Made by a program: the position numbers and the translations under genes
Shown: positions 20,417 through 48,756 of the stretch, one piece after another
Layout of the letters: each line of letters begins with the position of its first letter
Numbering within the stretch: position 1 is the stretch's first letter
The notes under the pieces: model-generated
Databases searched by the model: none
What the model saw: the letters and a program-made list of their open reading frames with translations, nothing else
What the model was told of the DNA's origin: nothing
Origin: Malacoraja senta
Lineage: Eukaryota
NCBI GenBank assembly: GCA_038087875.1
Contig: JAXLNO010005853.1
Coordinates: 186,001-234,756 of the forward strand
Reading direction: 5' to 3'
Length of the DNA: 48,756 nucleotides

Positions 20417-22660
20417 CAGGGCTGCCAACTCTCACGCTTTCAGCGTCAGAATCACGCCTTGGAGCAAATTCTCACGCCCTCACGCTCATGACCGAGTTCT
20501 CACGCTGAGTTCAGTCCCTGTATAGTTTGTCCCTTTGCGCCGCATGCCAGGGATCTGCATGGTTTGGCGAAGCGCGTCTGTTGCCGGCTGTGAGTGACGT
20601 CGCGTCTCTTCTCTCTTGGTTGGATGTGCAGCCGCCGGGTGTCAGCAGCTCTATGTGCCGGCTGTGAGCGCTGCGCTGCCGGCCGCCACTGCAGCCTCGC
20701 TCCCTCCCTCCCTCCCTCCCTCCTTCCCTCCCTCCTGCCCTTCAACTCACACGGCAGCACCAGCGCCGCCAATCCACGCTGCACCGTGCCCACCAGACTC
20801 CCCATTGGGCGGCCGGGGAGAGAGAGGGAGGGGGGAAAGAGAGAGGGAGAGAGAGAGGGAAAGAAAAAAGGGAGGGATGGAGGCAATGCGAGACAAGGGG
20901 AGGGAATGTAGAAAGGGGATGAAGGAAGGAAAGGAGAAAGTGGAGAAAGAGGGAGGGGGAGGAAAGAGGGAAGGATAGGGGCAGGAGGAAGGGGTGGTTG
21001 GAGCGAGGGGGTAGAAAAGGTGTGTGTGTGCGCTTGTGTGTCTGTCTCCCTGTGTGTGTCTCCTTGTGTGTGTATGTATGCCTCCCTGTGTGTGTGTGTC
21101 TCCCTGTGTGTGTGTGTCTCCCTGTGTGTGTGTGTCTCCCTGTGTGTGTGCATGTCTGTGTGTGCGTGTCTGTGTGTCTCCCTGTGTGTGTGTCTCCGTG
21201 TGTGTGTGTGCGTGTCTGTGTGTCTCCCTGTGTGTGTGTGTCTCCCTGTGTGTGTGTCTCCCTGTGTGTGTGTGTCTCCCTGTGTGTGTGTGCGTGTCTG
21301 TGTGTGCGTGTCTGAGTGTCTCCCTGTGTGTGTGTCTCCGTGTGTGTGTGTGCGTGTCTGAGTGTCTCCCTGTGTGTGTGTCTCCCTGTGTGTGTCTCCC
21401 TGTGTGTGTGTGCGTGTCTGTGTGTCTCCCTGTGTNNNNNNNNNNNNNNNNNNNNNNNNNNNNNNNNNNNNNNNNNNNNNNNNNNNNNNNNNNNNNNNNN
21501 NNNNNNNNNNNNNNNNNNNNNNNNNNNNNNNNNNNNNNNNNNNNNNNNNNNNNNNNNNNNNNNNNNNNNNNNNNNCTGTGTGTCTCCCTGTGTGTGTGTC
21601 TGTCTGTCTCCCTGTGTGTGTGTGTCTGTCTCCCTGTGTGTGCGTGTCTGTTTCCCTGTGTGTGTGTGTGTGTGTGTGTCTTCCTTTGTGTATGTGTCTC
21701 CCTGTGTATCTGTTGTCACATCCTGGCCTTAGACAGGGCTGCCAACTCTCACCATTTGAGCGTGAGAGTCACGCATTTCAGCCAATGCTCACGCTGATGA
21801 CAGAATTCTCACGCTGTCTTCAATCCCTGCACAGTTTGTCTCTTTAGCGCCACATCACAGTGATCTGTGCAGTCTGGGGAAGCGCGTCAGTTGGCGGCTG
21901 TGAGTGACGTCGCATCTCTTCTCTTCTCTTCTTTCTTGGTTGGATGTGCAGCCACCGACAACATGAAGCAGCCGGAGATAGAACTAACCAGGTGAATTGG
22001 TTGTAACACATGGGGGGGACCATAATGAGGCCAAACATCTAGGACAGGGTTCGACAACCTACGGCACACGGGCCGAATCCGGCCCCTAACCCAAAAAAAA
22101 CACCTTTTTTTTTTCAATTCGTTTTCACGGAGTCAGGGCAGGCAAGCCGACCTGAGAACTGCACTGCAGCCAGTCCCTGGGATGCGAGCTGATCTGGGAA
22201 CGGCAGCCAGTCCCTGGGCACGCAGAATGCCAAATTGATCATTATGGACAAATTGGGCCAGCCATGTACATGTTGTATAACTCTGACTCTATGCAGATCT
22301 GAATGGGCTTAGAAGGACCATTTAAGCAAAATTGCCCTCACTTTCCCCATTTTGATTCTTGAGATTAATATCCCTTTGCTCTGTTAACAGCGTTAAAGTA
22401 CTTATGAGATAGAGTCAGGAAAGGGAACATGTTATTTTCTTTTAGTTTGCTTTAATTTGTTAGTTGATTTTTTGTTAACTGCCATAATTTCTGAAATGGT
22501 CTTAATGTAACTTAACTGTTATAAAGCAGTAATAAGTGATTTTTGTCCAAACAATTGGAACTTGCATAAAATGTTTGCATTATTAGCAGGGATGCCAACT
22601 CTCACGCATTGAGCGTGAGACTCACGCATTTCACAAAACTCTCATGTTCTCACGCTGATC
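20417..22660 (+). repeat. Three copies of a hAT-like terminal sequence CAGGG(C/A)TGCCAACTCTCAC (20417, 21734, 22587)
   Basis: Direct repeats of about 220, 225 and 75 bp with repeated CTCACGC subterminal motifs. Confidence 0.6.
20815..21715. repeat. Polypurine tract followed by a compound ctccc(tg)n satellite containing a 140-N assembly gap
   Basis: GA-rich at about 20815-21015, (TG)n units punctuated by CTCCC at 21016-21715, Ns at 21436-21575. Confidence 0.95.
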
Positions 22661-24834: not shown

Positions 24835-26034
24835 CCCGGATTTGGAAAGGTAACGACTGATGAGGGATAGTTAGCATGGCTTTGTGTGTGGAATTTGTGT
24901 GTGACTCATGAATTTGACTGAGCTATTGACGAGGCGATGAGTCTATTGATGAGGGCAGAGCTGGTACACATTGCCTACATGGACGTTAACAAGGCCTTTG
25001 CCAAGTTCTCACTTGGCTTACTAGTCTGGAAGATTAAATCACATGAGGTCTCGGGTGAATGAGCCAATTGGATATAAATTTGGCGTGGTGGAAGGTGGTG
25101 GTGATGGGTTGTTATTCAGACCGGAGGCCTGTGACTAGTGGTGTATCACAGGGATCAGTGCTGGGCCCACTCAGTATGAAATGGGTTTGATGTGTTCCCA
25201 AGGGCTGTCCTCGCAGATGTGTGTATTTTGCCGCTCACGGTGTGTTCGGTGGTCCTTACCAGTCTCCTCCTCTTTGCAGGGAGGTCTTTGAATGTGCACA
25301 TTGCTGTAGAGAGTGTTATTCTCAGACTCCTGGGGATCTGAAAAGAACACAGATTGTTATTGCAATCCAGCATCTCTCCCCCACTGTATTCTATCACTCA
25401 AACCACCCACTCCCATTTAAACAACATTGGGACAGGTACATGGATTGGAAAGGTGTATAGGGATATGTGGATGGGGCATTTTGGTTGGCTTGAGCAAGTT
25501 GGACCAAAGAGCCTGTCTCTGTGCTCTATGACTCTATGAGTCCCCATCTCTGATTATCACTGTCTCTTGCCTGTTCCAATTGCCCCTCCTATAGTGGTCC
25601 ATCTTTTGCCAAGACTGTTCTTCACCCCTCATTGTGATACGTGGCAAGCCCCGAGAGAACCCTCGCTGCTTCTGTAGATACAGAACTGTACTGCAGAATA
25701 GACAGCATTGTACCTCCAGGTCTGATGTTTGGCTGCCCGATGGTGGGAAACAGAAAATAAACAACACCAGGATCTCTAGTAACTCCATGTCCTGGGTCTT
25801 TGTTACTGCTTCCACCATGTCTGGCCTTTGCTGCACCTTCCCTGAATGTTGGATATGGAGAGCTCTGGATCCCAGGCTCGATAGGAAACCCAGTGTGTAT
25901 TGTCAGTGCCAGTGGATGTTTCTAGTCAGTACATCAAGGGTTTGCCTCCCAGCCCATTGGGGACACTATTTTGCATGGGGCGTCCACACCACTACTGTTG
26001 TTTCACAGCTCACCGTGTGCTGACTGTTCCTTAC

Positions 26035-26112
26035 CTTTCTCCACTCCTACTCGGGAACGGCTTTGAACATGAATAATGCTGTAAATGAGGGCATCTGGAG
26101 AGTCACAGGGAT
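26035..26112 (-). CDS. Cytoplasmic exon 3 with canonical ITIM LIYSII
   Basis: Acceptor tttgtgtcctttccag|AT, donor G|gtaagg. 78 nt, phase 1-1. Translation DPCDSPDALIYSIIHVQSRSRVGVEK. Confidence 0.8.
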
Positions 26113-28628: not shown

Positions 28629-28745
28629 CAACGTTCCTGTCCAATTCTCCTGGTGTTGGAACTGCCTGGGTGGCTGCCCTGTTTCTTGTCTCTGTGTTTA
28701 AATCAATAACACTGTAAATAGGGTCCACTTCAGGCTCCTGTGAAC
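28629..28745 (-). CDS. Cytoplasmic exon 2 with ITIM-like PIYSVI
   Basis: Acceptor ttttttgtgtctttgacag|GT, donor G|gtgagt. 117 nt, phase 1-1. Translation GSQEPEVDPIYSVIDLNTETRNRAATQAVPTPGELDRNV. Confidence 0.8.
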
Positions 28746-30036
28746 CTGTCAAAGACACAAAAAAGCAATGCGTATTTTAATGGAGAAATTAGAGCTCCCA
28801 AACTGTCCACCCCATCCCCTCCCACAGGGTCAAAACTGTAGATAAAATGGAAGGGAATCCTGGAGTAATCCCAAAATGCTGAACTTTCCAACCCTATCCT
28901 CAGGGGTGGTGGAGGGTTACATAGATGATGTTCTTTGTGCAAACCTATGAGATACATTAATCAGGTATTGTTACTTTGGGAATAATAGGATCAATTCCGA
29001 ATTACATTGGCCTTTCAAAACCAAAGCTGGTATATTAGGTATAATATTTTTCTCCTTACCCCAAAAGGCAATGTACAGGCAATTCCGCTATACCACGAAT
29101 GCCGCATTCTTAAGGAACATCTTATTGTAGAAAATTACATTCTGAATATAGTTGTGCCAATGAGAAAAAGGACGTAAGGGGCTAGTGATTATGAGACTTG
29201 CAATAACAATGTTATTTCTCCCACTGTTTTTTTTAAAACAAATATCTTTTCTATAGCTCCGAGTTTATTTTTGTAGCTGCAATCTACAAATACTGATGGC
29301 TCAATGTAACATTGTTTATTAGAGAATCACTGCACAAACGTCAATTGAAATGATTGCCTGGCCACCCATGACGATCTGTATTCATAAGAGACAGTGGTAA
29401 CTGATTACTGCAGGGTTACATGAACATGTTTTTATCCCCAGGTTGTTTTTTCTAAGATCGCTTTTTTCCTGCTTTCCAATGTAACTTTTAACTGGATCTA
29501 TAGTTCCTGATAGAGATTACCTTTTAACCAATTCAGGCTGCATAATAGCATTACCTAATTCAGCAATCGTGTTGTAGCCAATTTGCGATTTCAAAACCTA
29601 TGTTGAGCAGAACTACCTGTACTTACTTTGCAGGTTGAGCAGCAAAAGTTCATGAGGCTGGTTTCTGGGATGACAAAGAGATTAAATAGGTTGGACCTTC
29701 AATCTTTAGAGTTAAGGACAGGTGTCCAATACAAAATACTTCCAGTAGGTTTGACAGTGTAGATTAATTCCCATGACTGAGGAATCCGGAATCTTAGTGC
29801 AAGCCCTGGGCCTTGAGGCGAGTCTTTTAAGTATTAATATTCCACTTGAACACACAACACGATCTGCTCTGAGAGGGATTGTCTTTGCTGATCTAATTGG
29901 GAGGCTATGGGAGTTAGGGAATGAGGGTAGGTGGTAGCGACAATTGAAAGGCCAGTTATTAAATGTGGGTTTGAGCTCTGCTTTTCCAAAGAATGTCCTC
30001 AATGTGAAAGGAAGTTTTGGCAGATTCCCCTATTAC

Positions 30037-30108
30037 CTGGCTCTGGTCCTTGTGGTTTCCGACCATTGGCCACGCTGGCATCAACACAACACATACGCTG
30101 CTGTGAAC
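30037..30108 (-). CDS. Cytoplasmic exon 1 (GSQQRMCCVDASVANGRKPQGPEP)
   Basis: Acceptor ctttcctgtgtctttgacag|GT, donor G|gtaata. 72 nt, phase 1-1, in frame with the TM exon. Confidence 0.7.
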
Positions 30109-31670: not shown

Positions 31671-33304
31671 TAAAACACAATATTATGTACTCTGCTATTT
31701 TTCTCTTTACACTACCTGTTGTACTTGTATATGGATTGATTGTACTCATGTATAGTATGATTAGGTTTGACCAAATAACATGCAAACAAAGATTTTTACT
31801 GTATCACAGTAGAAGTGACTATAATAATAAATTAATACATGAATGCAAGCATTTGTTGCTGTTGTACAAATCTAAGGACCTAATCAAGAATCTATTAATC
31901 TCCACTTTAAATTTTCCACTGACTTGACCTCCACTGTTGCCTGTGGCATTGAATTCCATAGATTCATCAGTCTCTGGCTAAAAAAAAAAATTGTCCTCAT
32001 CTCCATTCTAAAGGTTCATCCTTTTATTCTGAGGCTGTGCCCTCTGGTCCTGGACTCTCTCACTGCTGGTAACATCCTCTCCATGCCCACATGTCCTTTT
32101 GATAGCATAGAGACCAAGGACCTATACATTTACACCTGAGTTCATATCTTCTTGCATTAAAGGCCAACATTACATTTGTTTTCTGAAATCCACACGTTTA
32201 ATACATAAAGTGAGTTATCTGTCAACAGGTATTCCCCAATCCGTCACCACTATAACAGCATTGAAGTTTGCCACCTTTTTTTTACTGAAGTGGATTATCT
32301 CACATTTTCACACATTCCCATGTTGTTTCCCAACTCACTTGGCTTGTCAATATATTCTCTTCAAACCTTGAGCCATCACATTCCCACTCAGTTTCACATC
32401 ATCTGCAAACTGGTCCACGATTGAATCAGAAAGCTCAGAACCTTTTTCAAATGATACCCAAGCATTTGAAGAACAGCGAGGATCTAAGGACAGAATCACA
32501 GCCGGACCTTCCCACAAATTCATCAGAGGGCAAGGGCAATGAATACCTTATCTCAGGACTGTATTATTAAGAACAGGAAATTCTGACCCTGTTATACCCA
32601 AGTCACCATGGACAAGGTCTGTCAGGGTAACAATGGTGAGGGCAGACTTGACCCTTCAAGGGGTACAGCCCCAGTCCACCAGAACTGAAGATTTAACGTT
32701 GGCACACGATGTCTGTGCCGACCACAATGCCAAATTAAACTAATCGCTTCTCTCTGCACATGGTTGATCTCTTTCCATTCCATGCATATTTACGTGTATA
32801 AATGCTCTTTAAACATTGCTATCGTGTCAGCTTCCACACCTCCCCTGGTTGCACGTTCCAAGCATCTACCATTCTGAACAAATGGCACCTCTTAAATCTC
32901 CTTTAAAAACTTTCCTATTCTCACCTTAACCCATGCTCTCTAGTTTTTGACATCTCAACTCTGGGGAAAAAGACTAACTACTCTTTCTATGTGTCTCAGA
33001 ATTTGACATTCTTTGATCAGTTCACCCCTCAGCATCAGATGTTCCAGAGAAAAACAATCCAACCTGTCCTTACAGTTAAAATCTTCTAATCCAGCCAGTA
33101 TTCTGTAACCCTCTGCACCCTCTCCAAAGTGTCCAAATCCTTCCTGAAATGTGGTGACCAGAACTGAACAAAATACTCCAAATGTGGCCTAACCAGGGAT
33201 GACTGGCCTCCTGTTCGCAGTTCCAACCTACAATATTTGAAAAAGCCACCAGTCCCAAGAACACCCACAACAGCCCACAATGTAGTTGTCATTGGCAAAC
33301 TCAC

Positions 33305-33679
33305 CTTTTTTCAAAGACATGAGAGCAAATACAATCACAAGGAGGACAATAGCCAATATGGGTAATCCAAAGTAGAGGCCTAGGTTCAACGGTCTCCCAT
33401 CATTGGGTAAGCTGATCTCACGCGTGTCTATCTGGTGTTCATTCACAGCCACACACGTGTATTTCCCTGGCAGCCTGGGGTGAAGCAGCTTTCCCACAGT
33501 CAGTAGTTTCTCTGGATCATGCGTGACTGTCATCTCACTACTGTTCCCGGGCAGTGCGCTGTTCCCTGGGCCGATCCACGTGATGTTTGCAGGGGGCTTC
33601 CCTTCAGCCCTGCACACGAGGGTGTGTTCTCCAGTTACATTGTCGTTCACAACAGACAGCTCCAGGATGGTGGCTGGGA
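33305..33679 (-). CDS. Ig C2-set domain plus transmembrane exon
   Basis: 375-nt exon, phase 1-1. Acceptor ttccttctccaag|TC, donor G|gtgagt. Translation (V)[10 protein letters not shown]...[18 protein letters not shown]...GKYTCVAVN, then hydrophobic [24 protein letters not shown] and KK stop-transfer. From memory this resembles the Siglec-15 C2 motif (LCTAEGEPPPALAWSGP...GRYTC). Confidence 0.92.
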
Positions 33680-34335: not shown

Positions 34336-34698
34336 CCACAACCTCCAGTTTCGTCTCATCCTGAGTCACCGTCTCCTGTGTGGAATTCCTGACCCAAACG
34401 TAACAGAAATAGTCACTGCTGTCGTTCAGTCTGAGCTCCTTCACTCTGATAGAGGCGTCTCCCTGGTCTAGTTTTCCCACCAGCTTATATCGACCTCCTC
34501 CCTTTACAGTGACAGTGTAGGGAGGGTTCACAGAGTGGGGGTGAGTGTGATTAAAGACTGTGGACTCTTCCCGTGGATTCCCCTTCATCCAGCAGACAGT
34601 GATGGGGCTGGGATTCTTGTTCAAGTTGCTGAAGAAGCAGGGCAGTGTGGCTGAATCTCTTCTCTTCCCAATCACCATGGATGTGTTCTTCTTTCCAT
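34336..34698 (-). CDS. Ig V-set exon V1 (membrane-proximal V)
   Basis: Open 363-nt exon, phase 1-1. Acceptor ttttctctatacaag|AT, donor G|gtaagg. Translation includes ATLPC, CWMKG, RYKLVGKLDQGDASIRV and YFCYVW. Confidence 0.92.
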
Positions 34699-34930
34699 CT
34701 TGTATAGAGAAAAGTTGTATTTAACAATCTATTCAACATGGTTTATAAAAATACATCATCCATGCCTGTGACTTTGATTCTCCATCCCACTCCCACTCTG
34801 ATCTGTCTGTCTCAGACCTCCTGCACTGTTCTAACGAGGCCCAATCTCAAGTAACAACACCTCATCTTCTGTCTGGGCAGCATGAAGCCTTTGTGCTAAC
34901 ATTTAAAGCAACAATTTTAATAACTTGCTT

Positions 34931-35339
34931 AAGAGCCAGTCCATCATACGCGAATTTGTAGGTGACTACAGGCGACTGGGTAGTCACCACACGGTCGCCG
35001 GGTGTCACCTGTATGGTTGTGAGTCGTCTCCTTAAGTCGCCCAAAGAGTCGTAGCATTTTTCTGGTCACCGCTGCATTTTGAAATGGTGAAAACTTTTCG
35101 GCAACACTCGGCGACCTTGGGCTTGTCGTAGCTTGTCTTCTCCTGACGTAGGTGCTGTCGTAGGTTGTCGCCAGGATAATGTAGGTTGTCGCCAGGATAA
35201 CGTAGGTTGTCGCCGGTGCTGACCTCGGTGAATTCAATTGGCGACTACCTACGTCAACCTACATCAACCGGCGACAGGTACCGGCGTCAAGAGAAGTCTT
35301 CAGTTGTCTTCAGTTGTCACCAAAGTGGGACAGGCCCTT
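34931..35339. mobile_element. Non-autonomous DNA transposon (MITE, Harbinger/PIF-like)
   Basis: Imperfect TIRs (aagagccagtcc / gggacaggccctt), CpG-rich interior with gtcgcc repeats and a 21-bp tandem gtaggttgtcgccaggataa. Confidence 0.6.
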
Positions 35340-35619
35340 TACTGTTTGTATAAGAACTGGCCAGAACTGCCTCAGAAGTCAATAGTACCTGACCCATACC
35401 ACCATAACCATAGGCTGATGACAATATCACTGGAGATGCCACAAGACTCCCGTCAACACCAACATTGGAGATGAGACAGTGACGTTCACCTCTGTTCAAA
35501 CATGAGAAAGTGAAGCCAATTGCAAGAGTACAGTCCACATAAGTGGCAGCTCAAATATCAAACCCACTCATGGGCTGTAGTGTGCTTATTGAAAATGCAA
35601 GAGTATCATGAGGAGGGCA

Positions 35620-36660
35620 GATAAACGTAGAACTGCCGAAAGATTCTGCAATTTTTAATCTAAATACAGATATAGGCAGAGAAATGGCAGATGGAGTTTG
35701 ATCTGAACATGTGTGAAGTGTTGACTTTGGGAGGTTGAATGCAAGTGGAAAGTAGACAACGGCAAGACCCTTAAAACCACTGATGTACAGAAAAATATTG
35801 GGATCCAATTCCATAACTCCCTGAAAATGGCAACATGTTAAAAACGTGTACTGTATTCTTGTTTAATTGGTCAAGGTACTGAATACAAGATGTGTAGGAA
35901 GGAACTGCAGATGCTGGTTAAAACCGAAGATGGACACAAAAAGCTGGAGTAACTCAGCGGGACAGGCAGCATCTCTGGAGAGAAGGATGGGTCACGTTTT
36001 GGGTTGGGAAGAAGATACTCAACCCGAAACGTCATCCATTCCTTCTCTCCAGAGATGCTACATGTCCCGGTAAGTTACTCCAGCTTTTAGTGTCGATCTA
36101 CTGAATACAAGAGTCAGGAAGTCATGTTGTAGCTCTATACAACTTTAGTTACAACACTGGGATTATTGCATTCAGTTTTATGTGCAGTTCTCACCCATTA
36201 CAGGAAGGATGTGGAGAATTTGGAAAGGGTTCAAAAGAGGTTTACCAGAATGCTGCCTGGATTAGAGGGTATTAGTTATATGAAAAGGTCGGACATACTT
36301 GAACTGCTTTCTCTGGACTGTTGAAAGTTTATAAAAATATGAAAGACATGGATAGGAGAGAGAGTCAGAACCTTTTGCCTGTGGCAGAAATGTCAATGAA
36401 TAGACGGCATTGTGATAAGGACAGAGGGGAAAAGATGAAAGGAGATATGTGGGGAAAGTTATTGTTTACACAGAGGGTGGTGGGTGCCAGGAAAATACTG
36501 CTAGGGGTGGAGGTGGAGGCAGCTACGATAGTGGAGTTTTAGAGGCTTTTTGAAATGCAGGTAATGGAAGAAATGTATCACCTGCAGGTAGACGAGATTA
36601 ACGTAGCATCATGTTCGGTACAGACATTGCGGGCCAAAGGGCCTGTTCCTCTGCTGGTCT
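35620..36660 (+). mobile_element. Degraded CR1 3' fragment in the V2-V1 intron
   Basis: gagtttgatctgaacatgtgtgaagtgttgactttggg...gaggtttaccagaatgctgcctggattagag. Interrupted by the 208-bp palindromic insert. Confidence 0.7.
35891..36098 (-). mobile_element. 208-bp palindromic PLE-pLTR-derived insert with 14-bp TSD
   Basis: tactgaatacaaga at 35877-35890 and 36099-36112. About 80-bp inverted arms. Confidence 0.88.
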
Positions 36661-36740
36661 ACGCTGTCACTGGGAGCTCATTCCTCTTAAGGTTGTTCAA
36701 TATGATATTATCGTTTACAGCATAACATACGTTTCCTTAC

Positions 36741-37103
36741 CCACAACCTGCAGTTTCATCTCATCCTGAGTCACAGTCGTCAACATTGAAGTCCTGACAT
36801 AAACATGACAGGAGTAATCACTGGCGTCACCCTGTTTGAGTCCCTTCACTCTGATGGAGGCATCTCCCTGCTCAAGGTTTCCCACCAGCTCATATCGATC
36901 TTCTTCATTTACATTTTCAGGAATGCGATGTGCTGCTGGGCGGGGAGAATTGTGACGAAAGACAACAGACCATTTTGGTGGATTCCCCTTCATCCAGCTG
37001 ATGGTGATGGAGCTGGGATTCCTGTTTGAGGCACTGAAGGAGCAGGGCAGTGTGGCAGTCGCACCCTTCCTTCCAATCACTATGGATGCTCTGTCATTAT
37101 CAC
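36741..37103 (-). CDS. Ig V-set exon V2
   Basis: Open 363-nt exon, phase 1-1. Acceptor ctctatgcaag|GT, donor G|gtaagg. Translation includes ATLPC, SWMKG, RYELVGNLEQGDASIRV and YSCHVY. Paralogous to V1 and V3. Confidence 0.92.
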
Positions 37104-37464
37104 CTTGCATAGAGAAGAGTTTTAAAGTGTGAATATGATTTAATATTTGAATACAATAACCACACGGTCTTTATCAATACTTCATCCACGCTTGTGACTT
37201 GGATTTTCCATCCCATTCTCACTCTGATCCATCTGTTCCTGACCTCCTGCACTATTCTAATAAGGGCCAATCTCAAGTAAAGACATCACAGCTTCAGTCT
37301 GGACAAGATGGAGCCTTGACCTTGAAGACCAGGAACCGGAGAGGAGGATGGAGGGTGACTAAAGGAGCGGTTAACTGAATTAGGAGGGGTGTGGGGGGGG
37401 GGGGGGGGGGGGGGAGTAGGGGTCTTAGGGTCTGCACCCGAAGCTCATCTGAGGGAGGCACGGT

Positions 37465-38745
37465 TCATAGGATCTTACGCGATAGGAGTAGAATTAGACC
37501 ATTCGGCCCATTAAGTCTACTCCGCCATTCAATCGTGGCTGATCTATCGTTCCTAACTCAATTCTCCTGCCTTCTCATAACCTCTGACACCTGCACTAAT
37601 CAGGAATCTATTTATCTCTGCCTTAAATATATCCACTGACTTTGTCTCCACAGCCTTCTGTGGCAAAGAATTCCATAGATTCAACCCACTCCGACGAAAG
37701 AAATTCCACCTCATCTCCTTCCTAAAAGAACGTCCTTTAATGCTGAGGCTAAAACTTCTCATCTTAGACTCTCCCACTAGTGGAAACATCCTCCCCACAT
37801 CCAAGCCTTTCACTATTCTGTCTGTTTCAATGAGGTCCCCCCTCATTCTTCTAAACTCCAGTGAACATAGGCCCAGTGCTGTCAAATATTCATCTGATGT
37901 TAACCTACAAGATGGAGGTCGGAGGGGAGAGTGGACGCTGGCGCGGTTTCGTTGCCGCTGCTCTCTCCTCAAATTGTGCTTCTGATTTTCTTTTTTGTGT
38001 TTTTGGAAGGAATTCTGTCCCTGATTTGTGTATTGGTCTTTATAACTTATTTTTAAAATTCTGATTATATGTTTCCTATAAATCTCTGTAAGGTGTCCTT
38101 GAGACCTCGGTATAAGGCGCCCATAAATAAAATTCATTATTATTATTATTACTCATTCCTGGGATCATTCTTGTGAACCTCCTCTGGACCCTCTCCAGAG
38201 CCAGCACATCCTTCCTCAGATATGGTGCCTAAAATTGCTCACAATATTCCAAATGTGACCTGACCAGCGCCTGAAAGAGTCTCAGCATTACATCCCTACT
38301 TTAGTATATAAGACCTCTTGAAATAAATGCTAGCATTGCGTTTGCTTTCTTTACAACTGATTCGACTTGCAGATTAACTTTTTGGGAAACCTGCACCAGC
38401 ATTCCCAAGTCGCCTTGCACCTCCGATTTCTGGAGTCTCTCTCCATTTAGAAAATAATCAACGCCTTTAATCCTATTAGCAAAATACATGACTCCACACT
38501 TTTCCACACTTTTCCGTCTGCCACTTCTCTGCCCACTCTCCAAACCTATCCAAGTTCTTCTGCAGAGTCCCTGCTTTCTCTGCACTACCTGCCCCTCCAC
38601 CTATTTTCGTATTATCCGCAAACTTAGCCACAAAGCCTTCAATCCCCTCATCCAAATCATTAATATACAGCGTGAAGAGCAGCGGCCCCAGCACCGAGCC
38701 CTGCGGAACTCTGCTAGTAACTGGCAGCCAACCAGAAAAGGCCTG
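37465..38745 (-). mobile_element. CR1 LINE 3' fragment, interrupted by a short (ATT)n-tailed insertion at about 37905-38150
   Basis: [22 protein letters not shown]...FADN and CR1 C-terminal motifs in ORFs 38476-38826, 38301-38600 and 37553-38137. Confidence 0.88.
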
Positions 38746-39182
38746 GGTAACCGATTTAGGAGTGGTGGGGGGTTTTAACTTCCGCGCCTTAATCACATCT
38801 GCGGGAGGAACCCCCCCACCGCACACCTCCCCTGGGGAAGAAGGGCTGAAGAGGGCTGTGCAAGGTGAGGGTCAACATTCCAGGACAACTGGAATGGAGG
38901 CGGCGGATGCAATGGGCCTCTGTGGCCACTGCATCGAGGACTGTAAAATGGTTCAAAATGGCAACTGTTGCCCAGACTCAGTGGGTTCTTCTGTACATTA
39001 TGTACTAACCGGGGGGATTGTGCTTATTGATGTAAGGTGATATTCTTACTGATCTGTATGCAAAAATGTATTTCACTGTAATTGGTACATGTGATAATAA
39101 AGAAACCATTGAACTGAAAATAGACACACAATACTGGAGTAATTCAGCGGGCAGGCAGCATCTCTGGATAGAATGAATGGGT

Positions 39183-39210
39183 GACGTTTCGGGTCGTGAC
39201 TCTTCTTCAG
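39183..39210 (-). ncRNA. Minimal type I hammerhead ribozyme motif, core intact
   Basis: Minus strand CTGAAGA-A-GAGTC-AC-GACCC-GAAAC-GTC = CUGANGA / stem II / GAAA / GUC. Confidence 0.6.
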
Positions 39211-40199
39211 GAGAACTGAGTCAGTATCACAGATGCTGTAGAACTCGCCAGTTCTGATAGAAACAGCGGGCAAGTCACCTGAAATTGTTCTATTCAAGGT
39301 TGACCCATTGAACCATTGAGTCAACATTGAATACAACAATTTCTGGTAACTTTCCCGTTGTTTTTATCAGATGTTCTACAGCAGGTTATCCATCTGTGAT
39401 ACTGACTCAGTTCTCCTCTCTCCACTGACACTGCCTGATCTGCTGGGTGTTTCTTGCAGCTCTGACGTGCATTTTGCAGCTCTGGTTTATATCTTTGTTT
39501 GTGTTCTCTGTCTCCAGTTTCCTTCCTTAATTTATCAACCAGATAATTTCATCAACAGCAAACCTAGACTCACCCTTTCAGAGATATTTCCTATTTCCGA
39601 TCCACCCCTCTATACAACCTCTGCAACTTCAGCTAATTTATTTTAAGTTGCAATAATCGTTGAGAGAATAACTGATTAATATTCCATTTTGCTTATCTTC
39701 AGTAGAACTGGTTAGTTCTGATAAAAGAGAGAAAAAGTATCATCCAAAATTCTTGAATTCAATGGAGTCTGCAATGATGCAGTGAGCCCTGTTCTTCAAA
39801 TTGCATTAGACCGGTTATAAGGAAGTCACAAAAAATAGTCAGAGGGGGAATTGCATGGATGATTAAAATTACAAGCAACAGAAAGCTCAGGATTAACCAT
39901 GTAGAATGAATAAAATGTTTTCCCTCGTTCCCCCGCCCATCAACTGCATTTATTCCTTGGGAAAGCAGCCAACATAATAGTAAGATTAAACGAGAACTTA
40001 CCAGTTTGAAGTTTGATCTGTATTTTATGAGGAGTTACGATGAGGGATTACGTGAAGACCCCGTCCAGCACGCATGCGCGACATTCTTCAAAGCAGCGGT
40101 ATGGAATCACAGGAAACACAATAATTGAAATAAACATAGTAAAGAAAAGGAGAACTAAGATACCTGTTGATCTATATATTTGAGGGTGGGAGCGGAGGG

Positions 40200-40310
40200 C
40201 ACGTAATCCCTCATCGTAACTCCTCATAAAATACAGATCAAACTTCAAACTGGTAAGTTCTCGTTTAATCTTACTATTTTACTTCGGAGTCACGTGAGTG
40301 ACTACGTGAA
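40200..40310. repeat. DIRS internal complementary region (ICR)
   Basis: 40200-40278 is the exact reverse complement of 39976-40054 (79 nt). 40276-40310 is the exact reverse complement of 44786-44820 (35 nt). Confidence 0.95.
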
Positions 40311-40479
40311 AATTTTAAAGCTCTGTGATTTCAAACCGTGTAACAGTTCATACTTCACTCGCTGCCGAAGTCATTCAAGGGAGGAAGTATGTTATCGTAA
40401 TCAACCATAATCTGTTTGTAAACAATAATGGTATCTATTAAACAATAACAAAAGACAAAATGCTCCCCCGGGCTTAAAT

Positions 40480-41470
40480 TATATATTTTTGCAGATTTTA
40501 AAACTCTTTCTGCAAATAACACAGGTTCTGCTAGCGGCTTGTGGTAGAACATTTGGAACGTTTTCTCCATGTTCATTCTTTTAGCCGCCGATGTGGATGC
40601 TGCCCTGGTGGAGTGAGATGTATATACATCAGTATCTACTCCAGCAGCTCCCAGTACCTGCTTGAGCCATCTCGAGATGGTTTGGCTCGACACCCAACCA
40701 TGAGGTTTCTTGTGTCTGACCCATAAGGCTTTTTTATTTATTTATTTATTTATTATTATTATTATTATTATTTTTTTTTTTTCCCTTCTCCCTCGAGAAT
40801 CTCTTGTTGTGTTGATGTAAGTGAATAAGTGAGTCATGACACACAACCGTAGGTCAGGTGGGTATGCCCGGAAATCCATAACTAGGACTCAAGTTCCTGG
40901 CTTGCTCTGCTTTAGCAGCTCCTGAATGGTGAATGAGACCCGGTCTGGTGTTATAACCATGTTGTCCAGTCGCAGTAAGTGGAGGGACTGGTCTCTTTGT
41001 GCTGAGACTAGTAGCATCAGCATGACCGTTTTCAGGGTTAGCTTTTCCAGGGTGAGAGACCTGGCTGGGGACCATCCCCTTAGGTATGTCAGGACCACAC
41101 TGACATCCCAGATTTGTGTATACCTAGGTCTAAGAGGGTTGGAGTTGATGATACTCCTCATGAGTTTGATCACCAGCGGGTGAGACCCTATGGCCTGTTG
41201 TCCTGGCACCTGTTTTAAGTAGGCTGACAGCGCACGTCTGGCAGTATTGATGGCGCTGTAGCTCAATCCTTCATTATGGTGAAGGCCCCCCAGGAATTCC
41301 AGTACATTGGTTATGGTTGCAGATGAGTACGTTGTCCCAGTAGTCGAGCAGTATCTTTCCCACTTCCTGATGCTCGATAGGTATTGTTTCCTGGTGTACA
41401 TACGGTGTTATCATGTTGATGGTCCTGTCAGACAATCCCAGTCCCAGCAGTGGTCTTTTGATAATCTGCA
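40480..41470 (-). pseudogene. DIRS tyrosine recombinase, disrupted
   Basis: ORFs 40889-41401 and 40355-40693. In-frame TGA at 40889, A/T microsatellite at about 40730-40782, and a shortened C-terminus. Confidence 0.88.
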
Positions 41471-41553
41471 ACCCAGTAGGTTAATTTTGGCATGGCATGG
41501 ATGACTTATGCCTGATACAGGGTGTGTCAATAGGTCTGGGCTACTGGGAAAGG

Positions 41554-41907
41554 TCATAGGAGTTTCGATGACCATGTCGAGGACCACTGGGAACCATGGC
41601 TGTGTAGGCCAGTTGGTACTATCAAAATACCTGAAGCAGAGTCCATCTGTATTTTGCGTAGTACCCTACAGATTAAGGCAGAAGGGGAAAAAGCATAGAA
41701 GAAATCGGTCCCCCAGTTCAGCGCGAATGCATCTATCGCTGCTGCCTCAGGGTGTGGTTCCCAAGGGACATACATTGGTACGTGGTGATTTAGTCTGGAT
41801 ACAAAGAGATCGATATCTGGTGTGCCATATTGGTTTGTAATTTTAGCAAAAGCTCTAGGATTTAACATCCATTCGGTGTTTATCATTGAATTTGCGTGAC
41901 CTGGCAC
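41554..41907 (-). pseudogene. DIRS DNA N6-adenine methyltransferase-like domain
   Basis: PDIDLFVSRLNHH...IDAFALNW..FFYAFSP..LI.RVLRKI, the MT motif typical of DIRS1 pol. Confidence 0.8.
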
Positions 41908-42297
41908 TGTATTTAGCTTACCTGGTAGGTAAGTTGCTGATATCCAAATATGTCTATCGACCCACCATTACCAGATTGTGTTGACCCAATTGTCACATGA
42001 TATCGATTTTATTCCGGTCATATGGTTAATATAGGCCACCACCGTGATATTATCAATTTGTAAATGAACATGGAAGTTGTGCATATTCCTACAATATGCT
42101 TTAAAACCATAAAACGCACCCAACATTTCCAAATAATTTATGCCCAGTGTTTGTAGTAAAGACGAGTCTAGGTTAGTCCATCTACCACCTGTGCTGGATA
42201 TGGTATTAGTTGCTCCCCAGCCTTGAGCACTGGCATCTGTTTGTATAGTTAACGTTGGGTTATTGATGATGATAGGGCTGGAACTATGCCAAATGTG

Positions 42298-43250
42298 TTA
42301 TATCCACCATTGTAACTCTGATATTGCTTCAATGGGTAGTTTCATGGATCTGTCAAAGTGACCTGCATGTCGTTTCAACGCCTGTACTTTTGCCCTTTGT
42401 AGGTGCTGATAGTGCAGGAGTCCAAATTGTGTAGCTGAAAATGCTGCTACCATTTTGCCAATTACTCTTGCCACTTGTCGGATGGTTGGTCGATTGCTTA
42501 CCATTAAATTGTTGCACATCTGGGCCAATTCTGCTGCTTTACCTTTTGGCAACGTTACAGACATGTGGATTGAGTTAATTGTGAATCCCAGATAGTCCAT
42601 AGTTGTGGATGGCGTCAACTTAGATTTATCTGGATGTATGACAAACCCAGGGTTTCAAACAATTGTTTGGCAGCTAATACAGCTGATTTAGCCAACTCCA
42701 TGGTTTTGCCAACTATTAGGATATCATCAAGATACGCCATGACAATATGTCTTTGTTTCGTTAATGTTGCCTAGGCTGGTTTTAATATCTTGGTAAATAG
42801 TCTAAGGCTGATGTCAACCCATTAGGCAACACTTTATACTGCCATAGTTGCCCCATCCAGGTAAATTTTCAGGTATCTGCGATGACCCTTGTGAATGGGT
42901 ACTGAATAGTAGGCATCTTTTAAATCAATGCTTGCCATAAAGTATCCTTTGGAAATCAGTTGTTTAGCAGTTACAAATGTTTCCATTTTGAAATGTACAT
43001 ACTTAACAAAGGTATTTAGTGAGGTTAAGTCAATGATGATGCGACATCCACCATCTTTTTTGCTTTTGGTAAATATATTTGAGACAAATTCCAAAGGATC
43101 ATGTTTGGATTTCTCAATGACACCCTTTGTAAGTAACCTCCCCAGTTCTGCTTGAGCCTCTAGTTCTCTTTGACTGAGAGGGTAAAGACCCTTTGGGGTA
43201 CGTGCTGAACTGGTGGCATGTTTTCTTGAATGAACTCTATTTTGTATCCC
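42298..43250 (-). pseudogene. DIRS reverse transcriptase, frameshifted
   Basis: ORFs 42834-43094 and 42298-42618 plus intervening frameshifted segments (YKVLPNGLTSA, YLDD). Confidence 0.9.
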
Positions 43251-45304
43251 CGAATACTGTTAAGTATATAACTATCATTCGTGAGACACCTCCTGTTAGT
43301 ACAGACCTCCTGTTAGTACAGTTCCCCATTTACATGCTGGTAGGAACCAGACCCACCTACCTCCATAGTTATGGTAGTGTTCCTTTCTTCCGTTTGTTCA
43401 TCTGTCGTTATACTGCTGGATGTACTGCTGATGTACTGCTGATTGGGGGTGGCGCATTTTCCATGGGGTCCGTTCTGGGCCCTGGCCTAAAAAGGCTTTC
43501 GGGGATAGTATGCGGACCCCGAGCTTTCACCAGTTACCTAAATTTGACCTTGACTGGTGGACGCGGTGGGGTACTGCCGTCTGGTTTTTTGTGTGGGTCT
43601 GCTCGTTCCGGGGCCTGCCCTCATGAGGCCAAATGCTTTGGACTCTTCCTCCAGGTCTTTCACTTGTCCTTCCAAATAACAGGATCTGCAGCTCTGAGGC
43701 CGGTGTTTTACACAGTCCTGCAAACCTGGGATTGAGGGCAGGTCTTATTCTCTCCTTGCGGAGGTTATTTATCTCATATTGGGTGTAGCACAGCAGAGCC
43801 AGAGTGTCTTGCTGGTTTGTGGTCATATCCACCCCATCCACGGAACGAGCATAGGCTGTTATCCCTGTCGTCAGGAGCTTGAGGATTTTAGCTCCTGGTT
43901 CCGGATACTCTGTCCCCCCCCCCAGATTTGGCTGTTAACAGCCGGTACATTGAGCGAACTGCAGTTCCAGCTCTAGTGCCTCATTAAGTACCTGTCTTGT
44001 AGGGGTTTGAGGGACAGGTGGTTGATGCTGGCCGCCAGTTTTGGCTCCAAAGGCCGCCCTGCTCGTGGTGAAACCATGTAGCGAATCTCCACACCCAGCA
44101 GCTCTTCCTGATCCTGTACCCCAAGCGTACTCCCGACATCTTCAGCCAATGACCCCTGTTCCTGACCAGCCCAGCCCTGGTCGCCAACGCTGCCCTGCTT
44201 TGAGGGGAAAGTGATGGCCAGTGCATTGTAGAGTACTGCTGTGGGAGTGCCTGATCCCCCTGGCGAGACTGCTCTAGCTCCTGAACCAAGTCTCGCTGGA
44301 GCAGTTGCTCCATGAGCCTTTCCATTCGGCTCAGGCAGCTAGCTCTGCCGCTCTAAGGCGGACCCTCCTCATCGGTGTCAGACATAACCGGCCGGTTTAA
44401 AAAAAAAATTGTTTTAAAAACTTTTCCTCCAGCCCGCTGCCGCTCATCAGGCTGCGCTAGCGGGACTGGGCTCGGCTCGGTCTCGATGAGGGTGGACCGC
44501 CGCATATACGGTCCAGGTGCCGCCTCTCGCCCCCCACTGATGAAACACTCCCGTTCTGTTGGAGTCGAACGGGGGGCGGTTTTCTCCTTTGCCGTGCTGC
44601 TCATTTTCCCAGTTCCTCTGGAATAGAGAGCAGAGCACAGCTTGCGGATTACGACCTCAGTGTAAGACTTACCTGATGGTCCGCTGTTTAGTTTTCACCG
44701 ACGTGTAGCGGGAGCGCCTGTACTCCCGGTCGTCGCTGTTGCACTGCGTGAACGCTAATGTCGCGCATGCGTGCTGGACGGGGTCTTCACGTAGTCACTC
44801 ACGTGACTCCGAAGTAAAATCAAGGATCACTCACACCCGAGTTACTCTCTCTTCTCCCCTCCCCCATTACCAGAACCAGAGGCTGACAACAATGTCACTG
44901 GAGGTCCCATGATTCTCCCATGAACACCAGCAATGGAGATTAGACATGATGTTCACCCATGTTGAACCACTAGAAAGTGAAGCCAATCACAAGAAAGTAG
45001 ACTCAATAAACGGCAGCTGAAATGATCAACCTGTCCATTCCCTCCCACACACACAGGTATCTCCAGATACATTATCACCATCGCTCCAAGATGGTGGCTG
45101 AAGCCTAGAGAGGGATAAAAGTCAATTACATTCACTGTTATTCATTGGTGCAGGGGGAGAACCAGGAAGGGGTGAAGATTTGAAAGAGACCCAGCAGGAG
45201 AATGGAGTGAAATATTCAGAGAGGAAACAGAACGAAGCTGATTCTTCTCACCGTTGTTCAATGCGATTTTATCATTTACTCCTCAACACTGACTGTTTCC
45301 TTAC

Positions 45305-45673
45305 CCAAAACCTGTAGTCCCGTCTCATCCTGAGTCACCTGAATATCTTCCTTCAGAGTGGATTTCCAGATCCAAACATGACAGAAATAGTTGTTGGTGT
45401 CATTCAACGTGAGTCCCCTCACTCTGATGGAGGCGTCTCCCTTGTCTAGGTTTCCCACCAGCTCATATCGACCTCCTCTATTTACATTGTCAGTGCCGTG
45501 ACCGCTTGTGGGGTCGGAGCGGGTATGATTAAAGACAACGGACTCTTCCCATGGAGTCCCCTTCATCCAGAGGATAGTGATCACCCTGCTCTTTGTGCTC
45601 GAGGGGCTGAAGGTGCAGGTCAGTGTGGCACCACCTCCTCTCTTCCCGATCACCATGGATGCGCTGACATCAC
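45305..45673 (-). CDS. Ig V-set exon V3 (most distal) of a Siglec-15-like Ig receptor
   Basis: Open 369-nt exon, phase 1-1. Acceptor ctctatccgag|GT, donor G|gtaagg. Translation includes ATLTC, ILWMKG, GRYELVGNLDKGDASIRV and YFCHVW, giving the canonical B-strand Cys, C-strand Trp and F-strand Cys. Confidence 0.9.
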
Positions 45674-45773
45674 CTCGGATAGAGAATGATTTAAAATATG
45701 GACATTAATCATTGGTCGAATGCATTAACCACATTTTCTTCATCAATACTTCACCTGTGTCTGTGACCATGTT

Positions 45774-45981
45774 GATAGACACAAAATGCTGGAGTAACTC
45801 AGCGGATGAGGCAGCATCTCTGGAGAAAAGGAGTAGGTGATGTTTCAGAATGGAACCCTTCTTCAGACCTGAAGAAGAATCTATTCCATTTCTCCATAGA
45901 TGCTGCCTGGCACGTTGTGTTACTCCAGCATGTTGTGTCTATCTTCGGTATAAATCATCATCTGCAGTTCCTTCCTACACA
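45774..45981 (+). mobile_element. 208-bp palindromic PLE-pLTR-derived insert with 14-bp TSD
   Basis: tctgtgaccatgtt at 45760-45773 and 45982-45995. Inverted arms centred on cttcttcag-acc-tgaagaag. Confidence 0.88.
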
Positions 45982-47499
45982 TCTGTGACCATGTTTCTCC
46001 ATCCCACTCCCACTCTGACCCATCTGTCCCTGACCCTCCTGCGCTGCTCTAGAGCGGTGAAATGTAACTGTAAATGTAACTTCATCTTCTTTATAAATAA
46101 TATGCAGAATTCTCAAATCAACTTGAATAATTGCAGGTGACCTGCTTGTATTTTTATATAACCTACAATGTTGCTAAATCACGCCTAAAACCTTGGAACA
46201 TTGTGCTGTCAGTCCTGCCCCTCGCTCACCAAAACTCTAATGGCCACAACATCATATTTCCATGCATTAATCCAAACTCTACATTCATCTGCCTTACACA
46301 TAATACACATAGCATTGAAATAAACACACTTCAGCCCATCAGTTCCACTGTGTTCATTAACCTGGCCCTGCCAGCCCTTCTGATCAGTCTTAAGCTGAAG
46401 TCTACATCCCATTCAATTCCTCCACCTGCTCCAGTTCCCAACCTTCTGCCAAACTATATTAAACCCTCCTAAGTGGCAGCAACACACCTTCCTACATGGA
46501 TATTGTCGCCCCTCCAGTTGACTCTGCATTCAGACCTGATTCATTTTACAGCAATTTATGTTTTAATTCTTGATGAAGGGGAAGTTCTGTTGTCAATGTA
46601 AGTGGAGTTTAGGGTTAGGGTGGACAATATATCTAGCAGGATTGATAAGGAAGGATCCGGTGGATGTAGTATACCTCTACTACATTTTCTACTGCATGTT
46701 GTACTACATGTTCATTTTCCATCGAATGTAACAAGATTGCAGATGGAATATGAAAAGGTGGAGAAGGTGTGTGTGATAAATATTGACAGAGACACACCGA
46801 GTGATAATACCTACACAGAAATGAGAGATAAGATAGTTAAACAGAACAATGCTCAAGGGTTCCATGGAACATGTGGAGAACTTACAAGACACAGTTAAAT
46901 AAAACAAATGTGACACATTGAGGCAATGGTTAGTGAAGTGCGAGACGCTGGGCTCAATGATGAAAGCATGAAGTACAAGATTACGATAGCTACATTGCCA
47001 TAAAACAGAACAAATCAGGAGAGAAACAGATGATTGTCAGGTTGATGGGAAAAGTTACAATAAAAACATGTATTTTATGTTGCAGAGAAGTGGGAAGGTG
47101 GAGGAATCTGTGATAGGTTGGGGACAGGATTGCCCTGGTGATCGGCTGTTGTGGTCACTTGTTTGGTAAGTGAATAAGAGTAAATATAGGGGTGAAGGCT
47201 GTGTTGAACCTGTTCAACTACAAGAGATTTGTTTCCAATTCCAGTCATCACTCTCCAGGATGTCAAGGATGAGAGAGGATGCATAAAAGTTCCTTCAGAG
47301 TCACCTCCAGGGTTAGACTGGAAAAGCTGGTTCAGTCTTCTTGAAAGTCGAGACGAGATTCGATTGAAGTGGACACAATAACAACTAGTTTCGAAGACAA
47401 GGAGACAGACTTAAATTGTCATGAACATAAGCAAAAATGATGCAAAGTACATTTCATTAATCCAGGGCCTCACTGCCTGTGAGGTTGGTAGATTCAAAC

Positions 47500-48140: not shown

Positions 48141-48756
48141 TAAACAGGTTGTTTTGATATCACTATAGATCTCCCTCCTGAACTGTGATTCAGCAATCCT
48201 GTTATTCATCCATACAGATGAGTGCTGAAGTTTGGTTGTGTTTAGGTTCATTGTTGCATCATCAGGTTCTTGAACCAAGACTGAGCACCAAACTATTGTG
48301 TACTTTGTATAAGGTTGCACTAATACTTCAAATGTTAATCAAATGCTTTTACCATGTATAACTGATATTGTATTATTGTTTGATGTAAAGTTATTATTAT
48401 GTTGCATCAATGTACCTGCAAAGTTGCAGCAATGAATAATTGTATTGTTCTAATCCCAGTGCATATGACTATTAAACACGCCTGACTGGAGTAATTTGGG
48501 GGATTGTGTGGAAAGAATGGGGGACTGGGACTGATGGATGTCAATGGACAGAGGGCTCTGGGGAATAGATGGATTTCACAAGTACTTGTGGAAAGTTTCT
48601 TTCCACCTGCTTATGATTCAAAAACCACAGGTTAGGGACTCGGAAAAGCAGTCAGACATTCAGGACAGAGGTCAAGAAATTCCCTACAAGAATGTTTGTG
48701 AACCTACTGAATTTTCCATCCCAGAGTTTAGTTTATTGTCACCTGTACCAAGGTAC

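Follow-up and report, generated by a model that had tools for sequence, protein, structure and literature searches.

A predicted Siglec-15-like inhibitory receptor gene of skates with three additional V-set exons in tandem

Introduction

Sialic acid-binding immunoglobulin (Ig)-like lectins (Siglecs) are usually built from one V-set domain followed by several C2 domains in a row. Siglec-15, which is conserved among vertebrates, combines in mammals a single V with a single C2 domain, a lysine in the transmembrane (TM) segment, and an activating design of the DAP12 type. Among mammalian Siglecs, the closest precedent for multiple V domains is Siglec-12 (S2V), which carries two. Outside the Siglecs, pIgR is the classic multi-V ectodomain that arose by exon duplication, and in some mammals it has a domain-skipping splice form. 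Exons bounded by phase 1 introns on both sides (phase 1-1) are the general rule in the Ig superfamily (IgSF). Here, we describe a locus of the skate Malacoraja senta (GenBank assembly GCA_038087875.1; contig JAXLNO010005853.1, positions 186,001 to 234,756), the whole 48,756-nucleotide (nt) stretch of which is referred to as the window. Three V-set exons, V3, V2, and V1 in the direction of transcription, lie on its minus strand. Judged from their sequence and from orthologous loci, they are internal exons of one minus-strand skate gene, a paralogue of Siglec-15 that runs from beyond position 48756 to approximately position 25260.

The protein would consist of a signal peptide, an N-terminal V domain (V0), V3, V2, V1, a single C2 domain, a TM helix free of charged residues, and a tail bearing an immunoreceptor tyrosine-based inhibitory motif (ITIM) and a motif resembling an immunoreceptor tyrosine-based switch motif (ITSM). 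We consider it probable, at roughly 0.7, that this four-V ectodomain is made constitutively or mainly so. A literature search found nothing on Siglec-15-like multi-V genes of cartilaginous fish, and public annotation lists the family as "uncharacterized" or under assorted automatic names.

Anatomy of the three V exons

A sequence-only reading of the window had described three intact V exons on the minus strand, and their limits, open frames, and phase 1-1 boundaries all held in the sequence (Table 1). Using tblastn, exactly three V copies were identified in the window, with pairwise amino acid identities of 52 to 55%. All three scored 50.8 to 57.1 bits against a Pfam V-set cutoff of 26, and the B- and F-strand cysteines (Cys20 and Cys98) and the C-strand tryptophan (Trp36) are invariant among them. 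An AlphaFold2 (AF2) model of V1 (pLDDT, 81.6) contained the strands A-B-C-C'-C''-D-E-F-G, and Foldseek returned at least 500 V-domain matches to it in the PDB. The donors of the three exons are identical (G/GTAAGG). The lengths of V3, V2, V1, and the exon encoding C2 and TM (C2+TM) are all multiples of 3, and these exons join into an open frame.

The same reading had counted 64 residues shared by V1 and V2, which was recovered over 120 full codons rather than the 121 given. Its observation that positions 55 to 64 (C'-C'') lack any identity was also borne out, as HSVNPPYTVT and RPAAHRIPEN have 0 residues in common. Divergence among the paralogues is focused on the loops as it had proposed, with 24 to 33% identity in the loops resembling complementarity-determining regions (CDRs) versus 61 to 66% in the framework. 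The unusual GAG acceptor of V3 that it had pointed out is real and is identical in two other skates. In the orthologous loci of Amblyraja radiata (L001) and Leucoraja erinacea (L002), the V3 exon shares 94 to 95% nucleotide identity and the same splice sites, and the V2 exon shares 92.7 to 93.6%. V1 of the window has an extra cysteine, reading TVCW at a site where Amblyraja and Leucoraja have TVRW.

A single predicted gene with an N-terminal domain outside the window

To identify relatives, a profile of the three V domains was compared with 1.8 billion representative proteins, and the best matches were multi-V proteins of skates and rays. The A. radiata model XP_032874704.1 (P0001) reads V0-V3-V2-V1-C2, and models X1 and X3 of L. 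erinacea LOC129695366 (P0175 and P0154) read V0-V3-V2-V1-C2-TM-tail and differ in their tails only. In Rhinoraja longicauda, one model covers V0-V3-V2 (P0158) and another V2-V1-C2-TM (P0156). NCBI models in three genera thus join V3, V2, and V1, in agreement with the tandem ectodomain that had been proposed as one of two arrangements. The loci L001 and L002 are syntenic with the window at 92 to 93% nucleotide identity, have identical splice sites, and each carry, upstream of V3, one V0 exon preceded by one leader exon. V0 of the orthologues is a V-set domain of the Siglec-15 type (human structure 7ZOZ; E value, 2.3e-10) in which the CRVE arginine motif is present. As the window end (48756) aligns to position 12243 of L001, where V0 ends at approximately 10366, the V0 exon of the window gene is predicted to lie approximately 2 kb beyond position 48756. 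This true N-terminal domain, the Siglec-15-like nature of the family, and the ITIM in the tail were all absent from the sequence-only reading.

The eight exons identified in the window join into an open frame of 604 residues. The TM helix carries no charged residue, and its exon is in frame with the motifs LIYSII, of the ITIM pattern (I/V/L/S)xYxx(I/V/L), and TLYSNV, both of which are also present in the Leucoraja orthologue. The long ectodomain, with four V domains and a single C2, would therefore sit on an inhibitory receptor, with inclusion of all three V exons as the main or only splice form. V0 may bind sialoglycans, and the ITIM would be expected to signal through SHP phosphatases. Since Tyr or His replaces the essential Arg of Siglec-15 in V1 to V3, these domains would serve as a stalk, as extra fast-evolving contact surfaces, or as both.

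Cytoplasmic exons 1 and 2 have an identical acceptor context and share their first 8 nt (tgtctttgacag/GTTCACAG), which suggests that the tail, too, grew by exon duplication. The C2+TM exon is approximately 90% identical between skates; a 6-nt indel that keeps the frame lies in the TM, and dN/dS between the window and its relatives is 1.45 to 1.8. Across skates, the TM and juxtamembrane part of this exon (33305 to 33420) is conserved less well than the introns.

Table 1. Features of the predicted skate gene and of its introns (positions in the window)
Feature	Positions	Strand	Description
V3 exon	45305..45673	-	369 nt; phase 1-1; acceptor ...tatccGAG; donor GTAAGG; Pfam V-set, E 2.4e-15
V2 exon	36741..37103	-	363 nt; phase 1-1; acceptor ...tatgcAAG; Pfam V-set, E 2.1e-13
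V1 exon	34336..34698	-	363 nt; phase 1-1; acceptor ...tatacAAG; Pfam V-set, E 7.3e-14; membrane-proximal V
C2+TM exon	33305..33679	-	375 nt; phase 1-1; C2-set domain and uncharged TM helix; matches Ig_3/I-set/C2-set_2
Cytoplasmic exon 1	30037..30108	-	Phase 1-1; begins GSQQRMCCVDAS...
Cytoplasmic exon 2	28629..28745	-	Phase 1-1; carries DPIYSVI; acceptor and first 8 nt same as exon 1
Cytoplasmic exon 3	26035..26112	-	Phase 1-1; canonical ITIM LIYSII
Cytoplasmic exon 4	25260..25337	-	Phase 1-1; ITSM-like TLYSNV; used in the longer Leucoraja isoform X1
psi-C2TM-3	44930..45106 (limits approximate)	-	Decayed C2+TM pseudo-exon approximately 200 nt behind V3
psi-TM-2	35431..35571	-	Arg-type TM/cytoplasmic remnant behind V2; stop, no acceptor, no C2 part
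DIRS-type retroelement	39976..44820		In V3-V2 intron; tyrosine-recombinase and reverse transcriptase (RT) open reading frames; synteny break 44818/39978

Relationship to Siglec-15 and to other described receptors

The best single-domain match to the V1 sequence was the Siglec-15 V-set 7zoz (E value, 8.6e-8), ahead of TIM-1 to TIM-4 and CAR. Using Foldseek with the AF2 model of V1, 7zoz_A was also the top match by fold (TM-score, 0.82). Membership in the TIM (HAVCR) family, which was considered on account of the pattern RYxLxG...DxSLxI, was rejected, as the additional cysteines specific to TIM proteins are missing and Siglec-15 gives the better score. By sequence and fold, the inner V domains, and V0 of the orthologues even more so, are therefore closest to the V-set of Siglec-15, and both receptors have a single C2 domain and a TM segment after V-type sequence. 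The F-strand motif CRVE of Siglec-15, which the orthologues of Amblyraja and Leucoraja keep in V0, reads C-Y-V-W in V1, C-H-V-Y in V2, and C-H-V-W in V3, none of which has the arginine. The architecture also departs from that of Siglec-15 (one V, one C2, a basic TM, and a short tail): the skate gene has three V exons in addition to V0, an uncharged TM, and a tail with LIYSII and TLYSNV. With a V domain of the sialic acid-binding type predicted at its N terminus and an ITIM in its tail, the window gene is, as far as sequence can tell, built like an inhibitory Siglec.

The base architecture of the family, V0-V-C2-TM, was identified in chimaera, sharks, and rays, and three forms could be distinguished: one with a conserved Lys in the TM, one with an ITIM in the tail, and, in skates, one with an Arg in the TM. 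NCBI names the shark and ray relatives of base architecture "sialic acid-binding Ig-like lectin 15" and the Heptranchias and Chiloscyllium relatives "Siglec 12." The skate gene with V0-V-C2 and a Lys in the TM (P0161, P0176, and P0160) is probably the true Siglec-15 orthologue, separate from the window gene.

Likenesses to other systems are more partial. The skate gene shares with Siglec-12 and the CD33-related Siglecs a tail with an ITIM and an ITIM/ITSM-like motif and fast-evolving extracellular loops, but there is no orthology; its V domains are Siglec-15-like, and four V domains with a single C2 stand against one or two V domains with several C2. As in pIgR, tandem V-like domains are encoded by one phase 1-1 exon each in an ectodomain enlarged by internal duplication, although pIgR uses another V subfamily and has neither a Siglec-type N-terminal domain nor an ITIM tail. 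We know of no decayed C2-TM copies between the domain exons of pIgR. Several related exons upstream of shared constant exons also recall Dscam, protocadherin, and UGT1A. In the skate gene, by contrast, there are only three copies, none with its own promoter or leader, no evidence of exclusive choice was seen, and all known models of it include all three V exons.

Proposed origin of the array from tandem duplication of V-C2-TM units

The sequence-only reading had placed all three V exons before a single C2-TM exon. Only one is indeed intact, but two decayed copies sit behind V3 and V2 (Table 1). In psi-C2TM-3, the acceptor region and approximately the first 75 nt of C2 are kept, the C2 core is gone, and a TM remnant of the Arg type follows, with at least 4 stops. 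The stops and deletions of both remnants are common to the window, Amblyraja, and Leucoraja. Their protein match is the Arg-type TM of Rhinoraja paralogues (P0006), not the TM of the window gene itself, and nucleotide similarity from unit to unit reaches into the flanking introns. The decayed copies behind V3 and V2 suggest that V-C2-TM units, duplicated in tandem, gave rise to the array.

In a maximum-likelihood tree, V1, V2, and V3 each formed a well-supported (starred) clade containing all four skate genera, so the triplication predates the skate radiation. The V1 clade was sister to the inner V of the Lys-TM gene of skates. Values of dS were 0.27 to 0.50 between paralogues versus 0.01 to 0.12 between orthologues. 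In the scenario we propose, tandem duplication of a V-C2-TM unit took place in the skate stem lineage, the upstream C2-TM copies, of the activating flavour with an Arg in the TM, then decayed, and the V exons of the dead units stayed in the transcript by virtue of their phase 1-1 splice sites and so lengthened the ectodomain.

More skate paralogues lie on the same chromosome, namely, LOC116971575 and LOC116971577 of A. radiata (P0002 and P0155) and P0006, P0007, P0157, and P0166 of R. longicauda. Among them are the combinations V2-V2-C2, V0-V3-V2, and a V3-like exon joined to a V1-like exon and C2, as well as an Arg-containing TM; such other V combinations and the Arg in the TM suggest a cluster in which activating and inhibitory receptors are paired. 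In the shark Heptranchias perlo (P0163 versus P0008), the inner V exon of a family member of the ITIM type was duplicated independently and very recently, the copies being nearly identical.

Selection on the V exons

That the V exons stayed open under selection had been suggested from the window alone, and comparison between skates bears this out. Introns of the window and Amblyraja differ by 6.1%, with 4.6 indel events per kb, whereas the 1,095 nt of V exons contain 0 indels where 5.0 would be expected (P = 0.0065). The V exons are free of stops and have intact splice sites in four genera, beside dead C2-TM copies. Over whole exons, dN/dS between orthologues was 1.3 to 3.3 for V3, 0.7 to 2.4 for V1, and 0.55 to 0.67 for V2.

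The sequence-only reading had staked its case on faster change in the loops than in the framework. Sites were split in two ways, by the strands of the AF2 model of V1 or by an IMGT-like definition, and compared across three species. Under the two splits, the density of nonsynonymous changes was 3 to 4 times higher in the BC, C'C'', and FG loops than in the framework (Fisher's test, p = 9e-8 and 9e-6), while that of synonymous changes was equal (p = 0.58 and 1.0). Loop pN/pS was 3.0 and 1.8, and framework pN/pS was 0.60 and 0.69, a pattern strongest in V3. The numbers of changes are small, and loop pN/pS exceeds 1 only marginally (p = 0.03 and 0.17). The expected difference between loops and framework was thus found among orthologues as well. 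Nonsynonymous change biased to the loops, together with even synonymous change, rules out neutral decay. It fits diversifying selection, or at least a constraint limited to the framework.

Transcript evidence and alternative uses of the V exons

One of the predicted joints was seen in RNA. In run X1, labelled "RNA?" and derived from a related skate approximately 3 to 6% diverged, a 2,306-nt contig of depth 58 joins V1 (34699..34336) to C2+TM (33677..33303) at the predicted sites. The contig begins right at the V1 acceptor, and other contigs, of depth 8 to 16, span introns. This start is explained by a branch in the assembly graph between spliced and unspliced RNA, and it is uninformative on anything upstream. 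Because of a 12-nt deletion in C2, the contig may be paralogous. In runs X2, X4, and X6, introns are covered as evenly as exons, so these runs behave like DNA, and the read tables are crowded with repeat-derived joints and loose ends. A search for transcript-derived (Logan) proteins spanning the joints found none, only genomic open reading frames that read through the donors (P0178 and P0179) and the NCBI models.

Several observations weigh against a constitutive four-V ectodomain. In two run searches, with reads placed on stretches of at most 6,000 letters of the window (the V3-V2 intron spans 8.2 kb), no direct transcript was identified for the V3-V2 or V2-V1 joint in any species. In run X1, the V2 exon has a depth of 0, with approximately 58 for V1 and C2+TM and approximately 13 for the intron behind V2; this would fit skipping of V2, a transcript of a paralogue, or a technical hole, and a coverage hole by itself proves nothing. 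Pyrimidine tracts are short, by qualitative inspection, at all three V acceptors, and position -3 at V3 is occupied by G, the base least favoured there. The NCBI models are computational predictions that may lean largely on homology, and they begin within V0 and lack a leader. In V1 of A. radiata (L001, approximately position 29730), the canonical F-strand Cys is replaced by Arg (TGT to CGT; YFRYVWV); that domain would be without the Ig disulfide, and the change hints at relaxed constraint on V1. Lastly, the overall substitution rate of the exons equals that of the introns, and the framework pN/pS of 0.6 to 0.7 is not significantly below 1 with three species compared (p = 0.09 to 0.21).

Some of these points could also reflect use of the V exons as cassettes, in which subsets or a single V would be spliced between V0 and C2 to give up to eight ectodomains differing in length and loop surface. 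Any V subset keeps the frame, given phase 1-1 boundaries and lengths in multiples of 3, and the sequence-only reading had built on this symmetry. It is true of all V exons but is no special property, being the ordinary IgSF pattern and shared by the four cytoplasmic exons. The weak acceptors, with GAG at V3, and the lack of V2 coverage in X1 despite good coverage of V1 and C2+TM would also suit skipping, although the hole proves nothing and the contig with its deletion in C2 is possibly that of a paralogue. Among relatives, the H. perlo gene with its recent V duplication has NCBI isoforms with two V domains (X2) and one (X3), and the Rhinoraja paralogue P0157 joins its V3-like exon directly to a V1-like exon. 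Partial-V0 isoforms of Rhincodon and Hemitrygon were considered as a precedent and rejected, since their splicing from internal donors does not amount to clean skipping of an exon. Against cassette use, no Amblyraja, Leucoraja, or Rhinoraja model of this gene skips V3, V2, or V1, the Leucoraja isoforms vary in the tail only, and spliced proteins derived from Logan were not found. Combinatorial or mutually exclusive use appears in no isoform model of the orthologues in these three genera and in no transcript. We regard cassette splicing as unlikely, if the least so of the alternatives.

It is more improbable that V2 or V3, or the two together, are remnants of dead gene copies that escape splicing and have yet to decay, in which case the protein would be V0-V1-C2-TM or V1-C2-TM. 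The dead C2-TM copies directly behind V3 and V2, the overall dN/dS of 0.55 to 3.3, the intron-like substitution rate of the exons, and the uncovered V2 in run X1 would all agree with such relics. However, going by dS, the V lineages are 4 to 10 times older than the species splits, yet they are open and spliceable in four genera and lack the 5 indels expected. Moreover, the framework is depleted of nonsynonymous changes (p below 1e-5) but not of synonymous ones, which is not expected of neutral decay. A cluster of separate genes or of alternative promoters of the protocadherin/UGT1 type, in which each V would start its own transcript onto a shared constant part, is superficially similar in layout, with variable exons upstream of one constant region, but must be considered highly improbable. 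The V exons begin in mid-codon behind an AG acceptor, without a start codon or signal peptide, and therefore cannot be promoter-driven first exons; separate genes were rejected on the same features (an acceptor on each exon, a phase 1 start, and no leader). In tblastn searches, full-length relatives including the leader-bearing P0155 matched only the V exons and C2-TM remnants nearby, with no V0 homology, the leader part of this result being soft because the exon is short and weak matches were filtered. Orthologous loci have one leader and one V0 upstream of V3. Taken together, inclusion of V3, V2, and V1 in one constitutive or mainly constitutive ectodomain remains the preferred reading.

Mobile elements and intron change

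The V3-V2 intron of the window spans 8.2 kb and was lengthened by the DIRS-type element (Table 1). Amblyraja and Leucoraja lack the element in their orthologous introns, which makes it a lineage-specific insertion. The V3-V2 intron of these two skates measures 2.4 to 2.9 kb; V3 and V2 lie within L001 14416 to 18300, and V3, V2, and V1 within L002 14454 to 21920. Amblyraja carries its own insertion of approximately 8 kb in the V2-V1 intron (L001, 18221 to 26334), at window position 36188/36189. Given these differing insertions, the intron sizes of this gene change fast between skates.

A palindromic repeat of approximately 210 nt was found in the V2-V1 intron (35888 to 36101) and just upstream of V3 (45771 to 45984) as a self-match in reverse. 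Its summed contig depth ran from hundreds of thousands to tens of millions in four skate runs, and it looks like a very abundant hairpin or miniature inverted-repeat transposable element of skate genomes. Fragments of the reverse-transcriptase tail of a long interspersed nuclear element, with very high depth in all runs, lie directly behind the C2+TM exon (33076 to 33304) and in the V3-V2 intron (37553 to 38826). A run of 140 N occupies positions 21436 to 21575.

Implications for receptor evolution in cartilaginous fish

A further possibility is that the inner V domains are independent binding modules under diversifying selection, comparable to that on antibody CDR positions, and that their exons are combined differently from cell to cell. 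We consider this doubtful, more so than cassette splicing as such. If true, one non-rearranging gene for a Siglec-like inhibitory receptor would give a small repertoire of ectodomains varying in reach and recognition surface.

As read here, the skate lineage enlarged a Siglec-15-like inhibitory receptor by three extra V-set domains, unlike the usual Siglec build. The locus records how the ectodomain grew, as the dead C2-TM copies behind two V exons imply that a single transcript can take in duplicated units from its neighbourhood. This is an extension of known principles rather than a new kind of system. The wider family, with its Lys-TM, Arg-TM, and ITIM forms, looks like a cluster of paired activating and inhibitory receptors in cartilaginous fish. 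The loop-biased change suggests that the added domains may contact something ever-changing, such as pathogens or polymorphic self ligands.

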